Source of the DNA: Hyalangium minutum | GTDB lineage: Bacteria > Myxococcota > Myxococcia > Myxococcales > Myxococcaceae | Length of the DNA: 64,000 nucleotides | Assembly: GCF_000737315.1 (NCBI RefSeq) | Contig: NZ_JMCB01000006.1 | Location: 372,001 to 436,000, forward strand | Direction of reading: 5' to 3' | Shown: piece after piece, positions 20,962-27,659 of the stretch | Position numbering within the stretch: position 1 is the first letter of the stretch | Layout of the letters: each line of letters opens with the position of its first letter | Notes under the pieces: generated by a model | The model's input: the letters and a program-made list of their open reading frames with translations, nothing else | The model's database searches: none | What the model was told of the DNA's origin: nothing | Program-made: the position numbers and the translations under genes

Positions 20962-21149
20962 GTGGTGGACACTCCCTCCCATCCCCCAGCATGGCCCATC
21001 CCTGGGGTTCCTGTCAGTGCCAGCCCTCGCTCCCAGTGAAGGGTGACCTGTCCTCCAGCACAGGGTAGAGCGAAACATGTATCTGCGGCATTCTGTAGGT
21101 GTGACAGCCTTTGGCAGCCTCCCAGGTCTGGCACCTGCGACGAGACCTC

Positions 21150-24100
21150 ATGAGTAAGGACGACCCTACCCTCAGCATCGTGGCCCCTCCCCCCAAGGGG
21201 GAGACGGGCGGCTCTGGGTTGGATTCGACCTTGCCGGGGCGCACCGCCCGGACCATGGAGGTCTCCAAGGCGCTGCCCAAGGGCGAGACGGACCGGTACG
21301 ACATCTCCGGGGAGTTCGCCCACGGCGCCATCGGCCGCATCCTCCACGCGCGCGACAGGCGGCTGAACCGCCCCGTGGCCATCAAGGAGCTCATCTTCCC
21401 GGGCGGCACGGTGGAGGCGCGCTTCGTCACCGAGGCCTTCATCACCGCGCGGCTCCAGCACCCCTCCATCGTCCCCGTCTACGACGCCGGGCGCTGGGAG
21501 ACGGGCGAACCCTTCTACGCGATGAAGTTCGTCTCGGGCCGCTCGCTCGCGGACGTCATCTCCGAGACGAAGACGCTCCAGGATCGGCTCGCGCTGCTGC
21601 CCCACGTGCTCGCGGTGGCCGAGGCCATTGCCTACGCCCACACCGAGCGCGTCATCCACCGCGACCTCAAGCCCGCCAACGTGCTGGTGGGCGACTTCGG
21701 CGAGACGGTGGTCATCGACTGGGGCCTGGCGAAGGATTTGTCCGACAAGAACACCTCGGACATCGGAGGCATGACCACGCCCCTGGGGGTGGATCCGTCC
21801 CTGACGCACCTGGGCACGGTGGTGGGCACGCCTGCATACATGCCACCGGAGCAGGCCGCGGGCCGCGCCGTGGACGAGCGCGCCGACGTGTACGCCCTGG
21901 GCGCCATCCTCTACCACCTGCTGGCGGGCATCCGGCCCTATGACACGGGCTCCTCCGCGCAGGTCATCGATCAGGTGGTGCGCGGCCCGCCGCCGCCGCT
22001 CGCCAAGCGCCAGAAGGGCATCCCTGCGGACCTGTTGACCATCGTGGCCAAGGCCATGGCGCGGGACCCCGCGCAACGCTACGCCACCGCGCGCGAGCTG
22101 GCGGAGGACCTGCGGCGGTTCCAGACGGGGCAGATCGTCGCGGCGCATGCCTACTCCTGGCGCGAGCGCATGTGGCGCTTCATCCGGCGCTACCGGTCTG
22201 CGGTGCTCGTCTCGTCCGGAGCGTTTCTGCTGCTGCTCTTGCTAGGCACCGCGGGCGTCATCCGCATCATGGCCGAGCGAGACCGCGCCGAGAGCAAGCA
22301 GCGCGAGGCCGAGGTGGCCCGTCAGGACGCGGAGCGCGCGCGGCAGCTGGAGCGGGAGCGCGCCGACGAGCTGACGCTCATGCACGCGCGCACCTCGGTG
22401 GACCGGGACCCCAACGAAGTCATCCCCTGGCTGCGCAGCCTGTCGCCCAATTTCGCGCGCTGGTCGGCCGTGCGCACCATCGCCGCGGATGCGCAGGCAC
22501 GCGGCTTCGCCATTGTCCTCCGGGGACACTCGCAGACCGTGGATGACCTGGCCTTCACGCGGGACGGCCGGTACCTCGTCACCGTCAGCGACGACTCCAC
22601 GGTGCGCCGCTGGGACATGCGCGGCGGGGGCACCCGCGTCCTCACCGGGCACACCGATGAGGTGTGGCGCCTCTCCCTCTCCTCGGACGGCAAGCTGCTG
22701 GCCACGGCGGGCAAGGACCGGACCGCGCGCATCTGGAACCTGGAGACGGAAGAGAGCCGTGTCATCTCGGGCTTCCCGGGGCCGGTGGACAGCGTCCTCT
22801 TCACCCCGGACGACAAGCAGCTCATCGTCACCAACCGCGGCGATGGCTTGGTGCGCATCTGGAACGTGGCCACTGGCGCGCTGGACCGGACGCTCACCAC
22901 GGGGATGAGCCGCCTCAGCCAGCTCGCGCGCTCCCCGGATGGGCGCTACCTGCTCGTGCTCGCGCTCCAGTCTCCCCAGGCACAGCTGTGGGACTTGCAG
23001 CAGAACACCTCGAGGCTGCTGGACCATGACGGCACGGTGACGACCATTGCCTTCTCTCCGCGCGGAAACCTCGCCATCACGGGAGCGCTGGACCAGACGG
23101 TGCGCTCGTGGGATCCCGCCACCGGCAAGGGCCGGATCCTGGGCCAGCGGCTCGGCACCCTCTCGAGCCTGGCCTTCTCGCCCGACGGAGCGCAGCTGGC
23201 CGCGGGGACGCTGGAGGGCCAGGTCCGGCTGTGGAACCTGGACACCGGCAAGAGCGACCTGCTGGGCAGCCACGAGGGCCGCGTCAACGAGATCCTCTTC
23301 TCCCGCGATGGCCGGCTGATGGCCACCAGCAGCGACGACCGCACCGCGCGGCTGTGGGAGCTGGCCAACGGCCACAGCCGCATCCTGCGCGGCAACCAGG
23401 GCGCGGTGTACTCCATGGACTTCTCCCCGGACGGGGAGTGGCTCGCCATGGGCAGCTATGACAGCACGGCGCGCCTGTTCGCCGTGAAGGCCGAGCCCAA
23501 CCGGCTCCTGGTGAAGACCTCGGTGGCGCTGAACTCGCTGGTGGCCTCGCCCTCGGGGCAGCTGATGGCGGCCCTCGGAGGCGACGGTGCGCTGCGCCTG
23601 GTCGACGTGAACACGCGGACCGTCCTCTTCCGGGAGCAGCTCGGCACCGGCGAGCAGTTCCCCATCCAATTCTCGCCCAACAACCACTGGCTGGCGGCCG
23701 GGGACTCCGCAGGACGGGTGCGCCTGTGGGCGCTCTCCTCCGGGCAGCCCGCGCGCCAGCTCATCGGCCACGCGGGGACCGTCACCGCGATCGCCTTCAG
23801 CCAGGACGGCCTCAACCTGGCCACCGCGGACACCACGGGCGAGATCCGGCTGTGGGAGCCTGTCTCGGGACAAATGCGCCTGCTGGGCCGCCACGACCAC
23901 GAGGTGCTCCAGCTCACCTTCTCTCACGATGGCAAGAGCCTGGCCTCGGGCAGCAAGAAGGGCGAGCTGCGGGTCTGGGACATCGCCACGGGGAACTTCA
24001 AGGCGCTGCCCGGCCACGATGGCGAGATTCGCAGCGTGCTCTTCTACCCGGACGACAAGCGGCTCGTGAGCGGGAGCCTGGACCACACGCTGCGCATCTG

Positions 24101-24542
24101 GGACCTGGAGACCGGCAGCAGCCTGAAGGCCCCCGGCAGCGGCAACGGCGTGCAGAAGATCGTCATGTCTCAGGACGGCTCGCTGCTGATCAGCGCGAGC
24201 GTCAAGGACGGCATCCTGCGGCTGTGGGACGGCAAGACGGGTGCGTCCCGCGGTGTATTCCAGGGCCACCAGGGCGACATCACGGATGTGGCGCTCTCGC
24301 CCGATGGCCGGCGGGTGGCCTCATCGAGCGTCGACACCACGGTGCGGCTGTGGGACCTGGAGACCAACGAGAGCCGGGTGCTCCGAGGCCACGCCGCCCG
24401 AGCCACCGGCGTGGTGTTCCTGGACGACCAGCACCTGGCCTCGTGCGGCTGGGATGCGACGCTGCGCAGCTGGGCGGACGACCTGCCCACGGACCCCGAG
24501 GCTCTGCGCGCCTGGATGTCCACGGTCGGCAACATCCCCTAA
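21150..24542 (+). CDS. Hanks-type Ser/Thr kinase with one TM helix, coiled coil and about 16 WD40 repeats
   Basis: VAIKEL, HRDLKPAN, VIDWGLAK and GTPAYMPPEQ. TM helix AVLVSSGAFLLLLLLGTAGV, then repeated GH...WD units. Confidence 0.92.
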   Translation: MSKDDPTLSIVAPPPKGETGGSGLDSTLPGRTARTMEVSKALPKGETDRYDISGEFAHGAIGRILHARDRRLNRPVAIKELIFPGGTVEARFVTEAFITARLQHPSIVPVYDAGRWETGEPFYAMKFVSGRSLADVISETKTLQDRLALLPHVLAVAEAIAYAHTERVIHRDLKPANVLVGDFGETVVIDWGLAKDLSDKNTSDIGGMTTPLGVDPSLTHLGTVVGTPAYMPPEQAAGRAVDERADVYALGAILYHLLAGIRPYDTGSSAQVIDQVVRGPPPPLAKRQKGIPADLLTIVAKAMARDPAQRYATARELAEDLRRFQTGQIVAAHAYSWRERMWRFIRRYRSAVLVSSGAFLLLLLLGTAGVIRIMAERDRAESKQREAEVARQDAERARQLERERADELTLMHARTSVDRDPNEVIPWLRSLSPNFARWSAVRTIAADAQARGFAIVLRGHSQTVDDLAFTRDGRYLVTVSDDSTVRRWDMRGGGTRVLTGHTDEVWRLSLSSDGKLLATAGKDRTARIWNLETEESRVISGFPGPVDSVLFTPDDKQLIVTNRGDGLVRIWNVATGALDRTLTTGMSRLSQLARSPDGRYLLVLALQSPQAQLWDLQQNTSRLLDHDGTVTTIAFSPRGNLAITGALDQTVRSWDPATGKGRILGQRLGTLSSLAFSPDGAQLAAGTLEGQVRLWNLDTGKSDLLGSHEGRVNEILFSRDGRLMATSSDDRTARLWELANGHSRILRGNQGAVYSMDFSPDGEWLAMGSYDSTARLFAVKAEPNRLLVKTSVALNSLVASPSGQLMAALGGDGALRLVDVNTRTVLFREQLGTGEQFPIQFSPNNHWLAAGDSAGRVRLWALSSGQPARQLIGHAGTVTAIAFSQDGLNLATADTTGEIRLWEPVSGQMRLLGRHDHEVLQLTFSHDGKSLASGSKKGELRVWDIATGNFKALPGHDGEIRSVLFYPDDKRLVSGSLDHTLRIWDLETGSSLKAPGSGNGVQKIVMSQDGSLLISASVKDGILRLWDGKTGASRGVFQGHQGDITDVALSPDGRRVASSSVDTTVRLWDLETNESRVLRGHAARATGVVFLDDQHLASCGWDATLRSWADDLPTDPEALRAWMSTVGNIP

Positions 24543-26450
24543 TCAGCTCCCACCTTCGATGAAGGGACGGGCCTGGACGATCCAGATCTTCTCTCCCTCC
24601 AGCACCCACTCGATGTCGAGCGGGCCCGCGGTGGGGAAGACCTTCGTCAGCTTCGCGGCCGCCAGCGACAAGTCCCTCGCGCGCGCCTCCGACAGCACAG
24701 GGGCGGCGCTGGCGGTGGGCACCTCCTTGATGCCGCCCTGCGCGTCGAACACGAGCATCGTCGCGTCATCCGAGCGCGACAGCACGCGGGCGCCCGGGTA
24801 CTTGATGTCATAGAGGATCTGCTCGGGGACGGTGACGCCGGACACCACGCTCAGACCCAGCCCGCGCTTGGCGTTGATGGTGTACGTGTGGTTGTCGCTC
24901 GGGTCGTAGAGGTTCTTCGTCACGAGCACGCCGGCCGCAGTGGCGTTGACGCCCGTCTGCACGAGCACCCCGGAGAACACCGAGCGCGGCTCGATGCCGA
25001 AGCGCGTGCGCTCCTCCACGGCGTGGAAGTTCCAGAGCGAGGCCCACACCTGCTTGATGGCGGCGCCCAGCGCCTCGCGCCCCACCACGTTGGGCACCGT
25101 GTCGTAAAGACCCGCACCATTGAAGCCCTTGAGGTCCTCGGCGTTCGTGGACGAGCGCACGAAGACACCCTTGCCTCCGAGCGAACCGTTGATCTGCGCC
25201 TCCACCTGCTCGAGCAGTGCCGAGTCGATGGGCGCGGCGGTGATGCGGGCGCGGAAGGCTTCCAGGCGCTCCCGGCGCACCTTGGCGTCCTTCTGGAACT
25301 GGGGGTCAGCGAGCATCGCCTCCAGCTCCGTATCGATTCCGTTGCGCTTCAGGTGCTCCACGTAGAACACGAACGGGATACCAAACCCATCGGGGACGAA
25401 GACGCCCTTGAGGCGGGCCTGGATGATCTCCCCGAGGTTCGAGGCCTTGGTGCCAAAGAGACGGGCATCCCGGGCACGCATGGCGTTGAGTGAGCGGAGC
25501 TCGCGGACGGTGAGGTCGGCCTCGGGGACGAGGACCTTGCGAGCGGCCTCTCGGGCCTGCTTCCAGGCGGTGAGCTCCTGCTCGGTGGCTGGGCGCAGCA
25601 CGTGGCTCTGGTTGCGCACCTCGAGCCGGACGAACTGTCCGTCCAGTGCGACATACCGCGTGGCGGCGTCCTTGAGCGTGGCATTGGGGATGCCCCAGGC
25701 ACGGGCGCGCAGGTTCACGTGAGACAGCGGCGTGGAGAACCGCGTGGAGAGCACCCCGGCCACCGGGGGCAGATCCGGGTAGGACTCCTGGAGGACGACG
25801 ATGTCATCCGGCTCGAAGAAGAGGGACTCGTAAGGAGTGCCCGGCGGGACGATGCGCAGCCGGCCGAGCGCCTTGCCCACGTTGAAGGGCCGGTAGTCGG
25901 CCTCCTTGTAGAGCACGTCGCTGGTAACGGTGGGGATGTCCTTCAGCTCGTCGAGCAGGGACTCTTGCGCCGTGGACTCCGGGCGGAAGGCCACGTCCTT
26001 CACGAAGAAGGACTTCAGCAGGCGCTCCCGGGCGCGGCGCACATCGGCGGGGCGGATGCGGTCGCTCTCCCAGAAGCTGAACGTCCACCGCTTCGCGCCC
26101 CGGTGGTGGGTGATGTAGCCGAGGATGTAGTTCGGCTTCTCCGCACTGTAGTTCTTGAAGTACTCCGTCCGCTCCTCCGGCGACATCTTGTGCCGCAGGA
26201 TGACCTTCGAGACGAAGTCCTGGTGCAGCCGGTAGAGGTTGACGTCGAAGAAGTAGATGGCGTCCGACTTCAGATCGATGAGGAACTTGCCGACATCATC
26301 GGTCTCGACCGGGTGGGCGTAGGCGGAGAAGGTGGCCGCGTCGCGGATCTCCGAGATGAACGGAGCCCGCGCGCGAGAAGCCCCACTCGCCGGGCCGCCC
26401 AGCGCCAGGAGGAGAAGAAACCCGAAGGCCAGAGGAGCAGTGCGGAGCAT
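24543..26450 (-). CDS. Exported dikinase-like protein: signal peptide, N-terminal domain, phosphohistidine domain, C-terminal PPDK_N ATP-grasp
   Basis: Signal MLRTAPLAFGFLLLLALGGPASGA. TPLSHVNLRAR (His244), FGTKASNLGE, VRSSTNAEDLKGFNGAGLYD and DIEW. No pyruvate-binding TIM barrel. Confidence 0.8.
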   Translation of the reverse strand: MLRTAPLAFGFLLLLALGGPASGASRARAPFISEIRDAATFSAYAHPVETDDVGKFLIDLKSDAIYFFDVNLYRLHQDFVSKVILRHKMSPEERTEYFKNYSAEKPNYILGYITHHRGAKRWTFSFWESDRIRPADVRRARERLLKSFFVKDVAFRPESTAQESLLDELKDIPTVTSDVLYKEADYRPFNVGKALGRLRIVPPGTPYESLFFEPDDIVVLQESYPDLPPVAGVLSTRFSTPLSHVNLRARAWGIPNATLKDAATRYVALDGQFVRLEVRNQSHVLRPATEQELTAWKQAREAARKVLVPEADLTVRELRSLNAMRARDARLFGTKASNLGEIIQARLKGVFVPDGFGIPFVFYVEHLKRNGIDTELEAMLADPQFQKDAKVRRERLEAFRARITAAPIDSALLEQVEAQINGSLGGKGVFVRSSTNAEDLKGFNGAGLYDTVPNVVGREALGAAIKQVWASLWNFHAVEERTRFGIEPRSVFSGVLVQTGVNATAAGVLVTKNLYDPSDNHTYTINAKRGLGLSVVSGVTVPEQILYDIKYPGARVLSRSDDATMLVFDAQGGIKEVPTASAAPVLSEARARDLSLAAAKLTKVFPTAGPLDIEWVLEGEKIWIVQARPFIEGGS

Positions 26451-26454
26451 GTGC

Positions 26455-27486
26455 CTATCCCACCGGCCCCAGCACGATCTTCCCGATGGCCTTGCCGCTC
26501 TGGCTGTGCTGGTGCGCCTCGGCGAGCCCTGCCACGGTCCACGGCTTCTGGGTCACCAGGGTGGTGCGCAGTGTCCCCGCGTCCACCAGCGCCGAGACGT
26601 GGTCCAGGATGGCGCCCTGCATCTCGGGCTGCACGTTGAGCATGGGACGGGTGAACATGAGCTCGTACACCACGGAGATGCGGCGCACGTAGAGCGAGGC
26701 CAGATCCACCGGCTTGGTGATCGGATGGAGGCTGCAGATCTTCCCCATGGGGGCGATCAGCGCTGTCAGCGTGTCGAAGTTGATGTCCGGATTGATGGTG
26801 TTCAGCACATAGTCCACCGCGTCGATGCCGTTCGCGGTGAGCTGCGCCTTGAGGTCCTTCGAGTGGTCGATGACCACGTGAGCGCCCATCTTCCGGCAGA
26901 ACTCCACGCTCTCGGGCCGCGAAGCCGTGGCGACCACCTTCAGGCCACACACGCGCGAGAGAATCTGGATGCCGATGGAGCCCACGCCTCCCGCGCCGCC
27001 GATGATGAGGGCCCGCTTGGGAGTGCCGGGCTGAGGCCCGAGGGGAATGCCGCAGCCCTCCACCATGCCCTCCCAGACGGTGAGCGCCGTAAGGGGGAGC
27101 GCCGCCGCCTCGATGAAGGACAGCGAGGCCGGCTTGCGGCCGACGATGCGCGAGTCCACCACGGTGTACTCGGAGTTGCAGCCGCGGCGGGCGATGTTGC
27201 CCGCGAAGAAGACCTCATCGCCCTTGCGGAACCGGCCATCCGCCTGGGGGCCGACGTCCTCGACGACACCAGCGCAGTCCCAGCCAGTCAGGACAAGCTC
27301 CGAGTTCTGGAGCTTGCCGAAGTCCGCCACATTTTGCCGCACCATCGAGTCCGCGGGGTTGATGCCCACAGCCTTGACGCGGACCAGCAGATCAGAACCT
27401 TGGGCTTCGGGGACGGGCAGCGTGGCCTCATGGAGAACCTCGGTGCCACCGAACTTCGTCTGCCCCAGTGCCTTCATCGTCTTCAT
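26455..27486 (-). CDS. MDR-family (zinc-binding ADH / quinone oxidoreductase-like) protein
   Basis: VKAVGINPAD, GWDCAGVVE, AAALPLTALTVWE and IIGGAGGVGS. Confidence 0.9.
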   Translation of the reverse strand: MKTMKALGQTKFGGTEVLHEATLPVPEAQGSDLLVRVKAVGINPADSMVRQNVADFGKLQNSELVLTGWDCAGVVEDVGPQADGRFRKGDEVFFAGNIARRGCNSEYTVVDSRIVGRKPASLSFIEAAALPLTALTVWEGMVEGCGIPLGPQPGTPKRALIIGGAGGVGSIGIQILSRVCGLKVVATASRPESVEFCRKMGAHVVIDHSKDLKAQLTANGIDAVDYVLNTINPDINFDTLTALIAPMGKICSLHPITKPVDLASLYVRRISVVYELMFTRPMLNVQPEMQGAILDHVSALVDAGTLRTTLVTQKPWTVAGLAEAHQHSQSGKAIGKIVLGPVG

Positions 27487-27659
27487 GCGCAGCCCTCCCA
27501 GCGGATGTGCCGGGCAGAGCCTGCTACGAACCGCGCCCGGCTGCACGCGCGATGAGCGGCGCTCGGGAGGGCAGACTGCGGCCAGCCTGGGAGCCTGCCA
27601 ACCGGGTGCTCCCCACCGGTCCGCAGGTATGACAGGTTTGAGCCATGAACGAGGGCGCC

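Follow-up and report, generated by a model that had tools for sequence, protein, structure and literature searches.

ATP-dependent phosphoryl transfer is classically a reaction of the cytoplasm, and the locus described here raises the question of what an ATP-grasp enzyme would do behind an export signal. The locus lies in a 64,000-nucleotide stretch of the Hyalangium minutum genome (contig NZ_JMCB01000006.1, positions 372,001 to 436,000), hereafter designated as the window, to which coordinates refer unless another contig is named. A complete gene on the minus strand (24543..26450; 635 codons plus stop, ATG start in the list of open reading frames (ORFs)) encodes a 635-residue protein that consists of a signal peptide, an N-terminal domain, a central phosphohistidine domain and a C-terminal ATP-grasp domain of the PPDK_N type. 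This protein is probably a Sec-exported three-domain phosphohistidine dikinase, and it would represent a distinct, uncharacterized branch of the superfamily of phosphoenolpyruvate (PEP) synthase (PpsA), pyruvate phosphate dikinase (PPDK), rifampin phosphotransferase (RPH) and glucan water dikinase (GWD).

Domain organization

The features of the superfamily that are present in the protein are a PPDK_N domain with nucleotide- and Mg-binding residues and a catalytic His on a separate domain. The C-terminal ATP-grasp nucleotide-binding domain comprises residues 321–635 (24546..25490, minus strand), of which residues 331–630 were assigned to PPDK_N by Pfam (E = 6.2e-46). The central, swivel-type phosphohistidine domain (residues 187–300; 25551..25892, minus strand) was recognized by weak alignment to the His domain of RPH and to GWD1_pHisD. 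It carries the predicted phospho-acceptor His244 (codon 25719..25721, minus strand), which falls in RFSTPLSHVNLRARAWG within the motif TPLSHVNLRAR. Pfam found no PEP-utilizers_C or PEP/pyruvate domain in the product and no significant match in residues 1–230. The sole match besides PPDK_N was sub-threshold, namely GWD1_pHisD (PF22973) at residues 230–291 (14.1 bits, E = 0.036, cut-off of 27).

A full-length AlphaFold2 model based on a 60-sequence alignment had a predicted local distance difference test (pLDDT) score of 89.9 and a predicted TM-score (pTM) of 0.84. The confidence drops near residues 301–310, inside the linker between the His domain and the ATP-grasp domain (residues 301–320; 25491..25550, minus strand), which is poorly conserved and is the lowest-confidence internal stretch of the model (block pLDDT 77–83). 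The His domain is thereby placed between two partner domains, the N-terminal domain and the ATP-grasp domain, which is the layout that a swivelling phosphohistidine needs. A Foldseek search of the PDB with the full model matched RPH, PEP synthase, HpeI and PPDK, in all cases via the ATP-grasp domain only.

These results bear on a preliminary description of the gene that was made from the sequence without database searches. Its central observation, an exported protein with a His motif followed by a C-terminal ATP-grasp domain and without a pyruvate-binding domain, was confirmed by the ORF and by Pfam, and codon arithmetic gave the same His codon (25719–25721). The N-terminal domain that it left unassigned is still without an assignment, although its size is approximately 160 residues (27–186) instead of approximately 190, and a His domain of approximately 115 residues follows. 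The Foldseek comparison that it proposed for this domain was run and returned nothing significant in the PDB or BFVD, and the phylogeny that it proposed placed the ATP-grasp domain outside the PpsA/RPH clade (neighbour-joining, 47 domains). The Sec-type signal that it described was borne out by the signal peptides or lipoboxes across homologues and by the extracellular-type domains in relatives described below.

Catalytic residues and position of the ATP-grasp domain

The motifs VRSSTNAEDLKGFNGAGLYDTVP and AIKQVWASLW are present in the dikinase-like protein. In an alignment of 60 close homologues, K335, R432-S-S, E438, D439, the NGAGLY loop (GAGLY at 445–449), D612, E614, Q626 and R628 are invariant, as is the segment T240-P-L-S-H-V-x-L-R-A249 around the predicted phospho-acceptor. 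The same nucleotide-site set, from K335 through R628, and His244 are each at least 85% conserved across 111 distant representatives at 50% identity. The conservation of both the nucleotide site and His244 points to purifying selection and speaks for an active enzyme and against a relic.

The ATP-grasp domain is clearly homologous to those of RPH and PpsA. Foldseek against the PDB gave E-values of 1.5e-23 for RPH (5hv1) and 1.4e-19 for PpsA (2ols), phmmer of PDB sequences matched RPH and PEP synthases through residues 320–630, and hhalign aligned the domain to residues 13–339 of Escherichia coli PpsA with a probability of 99.5. The BLASTP scores of the domain were 98 bits for RPH, 77 bits for PpsA and at most 44 bits for GWD1, and a hidden Markov model (HMM) of the family scored 124, 128 and 60–75 bits, respectively. 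In a neighbour-joining tree of 47 ATP-grasp domains, the family (90/100), GWD (100/100) and PpsA+RPH (100/100) formed separate groups, with mean between-group identities of 23–25%; with two PpsA/RPH sequences and neither PWD (phosphoglucan water dikinase) nor PPDK, the tree shows separateness and not sister relationships. As far as these sequences indicate, the ATP-grasp domain of the family forms its own clade, inside neither PpsA/RPH nor GWD.

The His domain is more divergent. Residues 188–277 weakly align to residues 785–873 of RPH, its C-terminal His swivel domain (phmmer, PDB sequences). Weak matches to GWD1_pHisD were found in 21 of the 60 close members (best E = 0.0017) and a match to PEP-utilizers in one of them (E = 0.19). 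The family profile aligned to the GWD-type His domain encoded on contig L089 with E = 5e-4, a probability of 31% and 30% identity over 97 columns (hhalign), and hhalign returned no match to the His domain of E. coli PpsA. Judged by these profile comparisons, the His domain is nearer to the GWD type than to the PpsA type, yet it stays below the family thresholds, which amounts to resemblance and not to membership.

Export signal

The predicted signal peptide (residues 1–24; 26379..26450, minus strand) is MLRTAPLAFGFLLLLALGGPASGA, followed by S, with cleavage predicted after G23 or A24. Its n/h/c layout is apparent in the sequence: the n-region is basic, the hydrophobic core spans 15 residues and positions −3 and −1 hold small residues. 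Downstream of 26450, no in-frame ATG, GTG or TTG occurs until the conserved domain begins. Translation can therefore start only at the ATG at 26450 and must include the hydrophobic segment, and a mis-called start was rejected on this basis.

In 120 homologues with 53–100% identity, the basic/hydrophobic/AxA pattern is kept although the residues at the N-terminus vary freely, and several homologues have lipoboxes instead. By a simple heuristic on the sequence pattern, signal-like N-termini were called in 106 of 117 close (~91%) and 90 of 110 distant (~82%) full-length homologues, and the lipobox-like variants among these sets numbered 15 and 28, respectively. A Tat motif was absent from all 117 close and 110 distant full-length homologues, and Tat export was accordingly rejected. 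Some more distant members have a CarboxypepD_reg, Por_Secre_tail-like or Lamin-tail (LTD) domain at the N-terminus, and giant relatives contain fn3 and Calx-beta domains. Such accessory domains are typical of surface or secreted proteins and support export, which appears to be a trait of the whole family.

Two of the giant relatives, P0150 (3227 residues) and P0180 (2025 residues), each have two stretches matching PPDK_N together with IG_AIR9-like repeats; in P0150, fn3 and Calx-beta domains are also present, along with an N-terminal signal. Each of these proteins may thus hold two dikinase modules. In a soil subgroup (P0141, P0144, P0151, P0155, P0156, P0158, P0163, P0175 and P0176), the motif A-Q-x-A-R-K-P-S stands right after the signal peptide and may be a sorting or maturation signal.

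Size and distribution of the family

The product of the gene is 100% identical to cluster P0001 and 88% identical to a 'PEP/pyruvate-binding domain-containing protein' of Hyalangium versicolor. A protein database search gave 2258 matches, of which the best 120 are nearly all approximately 620–680 residues long. The few of these that are named come from Hyalangium, Vitiosangium, Stigmatella hybrida and metagenome-assembled genomes (MAGs) of Kofleriaceae, and all bear the sole label "PEP/pyruvate-binding domain-containing protein". When 1.84 billion representatives at 50% identity were searched with a profile, 2204 proteins matched at E ≤ 1e-30, and nearly all of the best 150 of these (at least 292 bits) match from the N-terminal domain through the ATP-grasp domain. 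A scan with the N-terminal domain of one genome per species found 113 species, the best 80 of which are all Myxococcota. Bacteroidota are represented in a distant cluster by Aquipluma nitroreducens and a Prolixibacteraceae MAG, and a metagenome scan with a third subgroup matched more than 581 stretches, mostly from soil and rhizosphere samples. The family is, by the breadth of these searches, large, uncharacterized and distributed over several bacterial phyla. No description of exported dikinases was found in the literature.

N-terminal domain

The N-terminal domain (residues 27–186; 25893..26372, minus strand) was modelled separately by AlphaFold2 with a pLDDT of 95. Foldseek returned no significant fold relative in the PDB (best E = 0.055, TM-score below 0.3) or in BFVD. 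The domain is without a Pfam or NCBIfam match, and its profile had no match among PDB sequences. Conservation across the 111 representatives reaches at least 85% at H76, F79, Y101 and D130. The domain is presumed to be the acceptor-binding or second-half-reaction domain, and the family would then supply an acceptor-binding domain that has no relative in the PDB or BFVD.

Genomic context

The gene neighbourhood was examined in the window, in three contigs of distant homologues, in 80 Myxococcota loci (clustered by all-versus-all BLAST), in 80 soil-metagenome loci and in six single contexts. In the window, a gene for a protein similar to Zn-dependent alcohol dehydrogenases and quinone oxidoreductases (26455–27546, minus strand) has its stop 4 nucleotides before the ATG of the dikinase-like gene, which suggests co-transcription. 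The dehydrogenase-like protein is cytoplasmic, without a signal peptide, and its gene is unlinked to the dikinase-like gene in other lineages. The homologue P0002 begins with MKTMKAL, the likely start residues of the dehydrogenase-like protein, a possible sign that a deletion or fusion has occurred in the genome of P0002. On the other side, a gene for a 1143-residue protein that joins a Ser/Thr protein kinase to a long WD40 β-propeller array (21111–24542, plus strand) is convergent with the dikinase-like gene; the two genes end at 24542 and 24543, with zero intergenic bases.

The synteny seen elsewhere is lineage-specific, and the lineage-specific neighbours of Kofleriaceae and of the soil group have no homologue in the window. 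In Kofleriaceae, the dikinase-like gene usually follows genes for a lipoprotein-type methyltransferase and a 124-residue protein. The methyltransferase is a class I S-adenosylmethionine (SAM)-dependent enzyme with a lipoprotein signal (e.g. MSRVVLCLVLLVAACGDK), encoded upstream on the same strand in L002 (6752–7408), L003 (6809–7420) and about 50 of the 80 Myxococcota loci, and it appears from its signal to be a second cofactor-dependent enzyme that is exported. In the soil subgroup, a pyridoxal phosphate (PLP)-dependent decarboxylase or a carbonic anhydrase is encoded upstream and a small tetratricopeptide repeat (TPR) lipoprotein downstream. The gene for this lipoprotein (approximately 175 residues) lies directly downstream in L091 (5411–5923) and in 23 of the 80 soil-metagenome loci, and in L091 it overlaps the stop of the dikinase-like gene by 4 nucleotides, which suggests translational coupling.

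Among the single contexts, L092 contains a PAP2 phosphatase, Fur, a phosphonate ABC transporter and a phosphate-selective porin, and in L001 the dikinase-like gene adjoins a His_Phos_1 phosphatase. L086, the context of the low-GC member P0126, encodes an Ank-repeat/UCH protein, a phospholipase-like protein, PLD and NlpC/P60, a gene set that is typical of host-associated or intracellular bacteria. None of the observed neighbours amounts to a functional partner.

Proposed mechanism and alternative functions

We infer dikinase chemistry, a role of the N-terminal domain in that chemistry and an extracytoplasmic site of action. After export and cleavage of the signal peptide, the C-terminal ATP-grasp domain would bind a nucleoside triphosphate, and His244 on the central mobile domain would attack its β-phosphate to give AMP and a pyrophosphoryl-His or phospho-His, the γ-phosphate being lost to water. 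Swivelling on the linker at either side, the His domain would reach the N-terminal domain, where the conserved polar cluster of H76, Y101 and D130 would position an acceptor that receives the phosphate. The proposal commits itself to nucleotide binding, a phosphorylated His244 and transfer at the N-terminal domain because the conserved residues imply these steps.

Several points weigh against an exported dikinase. The periplasm, like the cell surface, is usually assumed to be free of ATP, and the data give no account of how an ATP-dependent enzyme would work there. ATP from lysed prey, given as an example in the preliminary description, would not obviously serve the family at large, members of which are also found in Bacteroidota and in many soil-metagenome lineages. 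The signal-peptide calls come from a pattern heuristic, and the small ATP-grasp tree places the branch apart without placing it next to any other. No acceptor is indicated, either by relatives of the N-terminal domain, which were not found among PDB folds or sequences or in BFVD, or by a neighbour conserved across lineages, none of which was present in the sampled contexts.

The ATP paradox would be removed if the protein were exported (by Sec, then by a type II secretion system, in outer membrane vesicles or by surface exposure) and acted on a metabolite or polymer inside a prey or host cell, where ATP is plentiful. A delivered effector of this kind would suit a family that is rich in predatory Myxococcota, as well as the setting of the distant member in L086 among Ank-repeat/UCH, phospholipase-like and PLD genes. 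We nevertheless consider it rather unlikely, since the protein has no translocation or toxin-delivery domain, the sampled contexts held neither a conserved immunity-like neighbour nor linked secretion-system genes, and the family is also common in soil lineages in which it is flanked by housekeeping genes. It also seems improbable that the protein is a true GWD/PWD-like glycan dikinase acting on an extracellular or periplasmic polysaccharide, such as an exopolysaccharide, a storage or prey glucan or an envelope glycan. The His-then-ATP-grasp order common to GWD, the weakly GWD-like His domain and the β-sandwich accessory domains of some relatives, which are often seen in glycan-active surface proteins, are consistent with such a role; against it stand the lack of any recognized carbohydrate-binding module (CBM) in the window protein and 60 homologues, an N-terminal domain unrelated to the pre-His region of GWD, an ATP-grasp domain that does not group with GWD1 and the location of the Bacteroidota member outside a polysaccharide utilization locus.

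An enzyme without an organic acceptor would convert extracellular ATP to AMP and two phosphates via phospho-His, in phosphate scavenging or in removal of an ATP signal, or the protein would serve as a sensor of extracellular ATP. Water dikinases already pass one phosphate to water, and the phosphate-related surroundings in L092 and the His_Phos_1 neighbour in L001 would fit; these associations are, however, single cases, the strong conservation of the N-terminal domain with its invariant polar residues argues for a specific bound partner, and simpler exported phosphatases already exist for scavenging. We consider this function very unlikely. The reading for which we see the smallest chance is that of a cytoplasmic enzyme, with a mis-called start or a hydrophobic N-terminus that is not an export signal. 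The heuristic nature of the calls and a few homologues without a clear hydrophobic N-terminus (e.g. P0011 and P0049) speak for it, and it is opposed by the single in-frame start before the conserved domain, by the n/h/c pattern kept down to 53% identity despite differing residues and by the lipobox variants and extracellular accessory domains in relatives.

The exported dikinase proposed above belongs to a large family that keeps both its export signal and an intact ATP-grasp/phospho-His apparatus in Myxococcota, Bacteroidota and abundant soil lineages. If its members are active outside the cell, they would point to an unrecognized extracytoplasmic supply of nucleotide, to a new class of envelope or extracellular modification or to a delivered effector. 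We tentatively suggest, at a level of confidence short of that for the dikinase assignment itself, that they may constitute a widespread, cross-phylum extracytoplasmic ATP-grasp/phosphohistidine class that phosphorylates an envelope, matrix or environmental substrate by means of a previously unseen acceptor-binding fold. If this phosphorylation is nucleotide-driven, nucleotide would have to be available for use in the periplasm or at the cell surface; otherwise the phosphoryl donor would have to be one that is as yet unrecognized.

Comparison with known dikinases

RPH (PDB 5hv1/5fbs) was the best match of the ATP-grasp domain by phmmer (3e-22), Foldseek (1.5e-23) and BLASTP (98 bits). Like the protein described here, RPH has three domains, and it phosphorylates a non-pyruvate acceptor via a swivelling His. 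However, its domains are ordered as ATP-grasp, rifampin (RIF)-binding domain and C-terminal His domain, whereas the dikinase-like protein has a different order and no RIF-binding domain, and the Foldseek alignment was confined to the ATP-grasp domain (318 columns of 847). RPH is also cytoplasmic with a His motif of the GGxxTHGAV type, in contrast to an exported-type protein with TPLSHVNLRAR. Membership in RPH was rejected, with a score of 123.6 bits for NCBIfam NF041857 against a cut-off of 999.

PpsA and PPDK have a homologous ATP-grasp domain and, as in the dikinase-like protein, a central His domain between two partner domains. The order is mirrored, the ATP-grasp domain of E. coli PpsA being located at residues 13–339 of 792. 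Their C-terminal PEP-utilizers_C TIM barrel is absent from the dikinase-like protein, and PpsA has no signal peptide. The PpsA equivalogs of NCBIfam scored 135–140 bits against cut-offs of 598–740 (139.8 versus 598 for PpsA), and membership in PpsA was rejected. The NCBIfam models for PEP synthase, RPH and PigC/RedH all match via the ATP-grasp domain only, far below their curated cut-offs. Phenylphosphate synthase and HpeI-type dikinases (PDB 9goj) share the PPDK_N ATP-grasp domain (Foldseek E = 2.7e-19) and phosphorylate a non-pyruvate hydroxyl acceptor. They are built from separate cytoplasmic subunits, in contrast to a single exported chain with another acceptor domain.

The plant and algal α-glucan, water dikinase (GWD1; EC 2.7.9.4) and PWD phosphorylate C6/C3 of glucans with the β-phosphate of ATP. 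In GWD, the His domain precedes the C-terminal PPDK_N ATP-grasp domain, which is the order of the dikinase-like protein (187–300, then 331–630). The plant GWD1 sequences used were exon-sized pieces of up to 314 residues that cover the ATP-grasp domain and end in VVQTRPQM; the His domain was taken from a GWD-like gene in L089, whose frameshifted pieces encode Ig_N_CWD1, GWD1_pHisD and PPDK_N in this order. This gene (L089 7310–10900) is approximately 58% identical to plant GWD1 in the ATP-grasp domain and is split into four ORFs, by frameshifts or assembly errors. On L089, a contig of 87 kb, the neighbouring genes are of bacterial type (AtuA, enoyl-CoA hydratase and a DDE transposase). A His motif of the LSHVxxRAR type is common to both proteins (DLVSHVAVRARN in the L089 gene versus TPLSHVNLRARA in the dikinase-like protein), as is the VWAS.WN motif.

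The dikinase-like protein is half the size of GWD/PWD or less, its ATP-grasp domain is approximately 23% identical to that of GWD, and GWD is plastidial while the dikinase-like protein carries an export signal. Pfam found no CBM45, CBM20 or Ig_N_CWD1 module in the window protein or in 60 homologues, and the profile of the N-terminal domain did not align with the helical stretch that precedes the His domain in GWD, as represented by the upstream pieces of the L089 gene. The segment RSSTNAEDLKGFNGAGLYDTVP is 64% identical over 28 residues to RSDSNGEDLEGYAGAGLYDSVP of GWD1, but the two are non-collinear. In plant GWD1 (P0392 and others), the loop motif RSD-SNGEDLEGYAGAGLYDS is displaced approximately 100 residues toward the C-terminus relative to PpsA, RPH and the present family, and the canonical site reads MKSSGMPWPGDEG, in which the conserved Arg is lost. 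The canonical-site motif RSSAN.EDL..AGLY of the dikinase-like protein may be PWD-like. PWD is a possible closest plant relative; the comparison covered GWD1 and the L089 gene.

Membership in GWD/PWD was rejected because of the missing CBM45 and CBM20, the unrelated N-terminal domain, the sub-threshold GWD1_pHisD match and the separation of the ATP-grasp domain from GWD1. The preliminary description, which had portrayed the protein as built like GWD/PWD, was thus correct on the architecture and export but over-interpreted the likeness: the domain order and a weakly GWD-like His domain stand, whereas the protein has no CBM, an unrelated N-terminal domain, an ATP-grasp domain in its own clade and a non-collinear motif. 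The order of a His domain followed by an ATP-grasp domain, known from the plant starch dikinases, is shown by this family to be common in bacteria.

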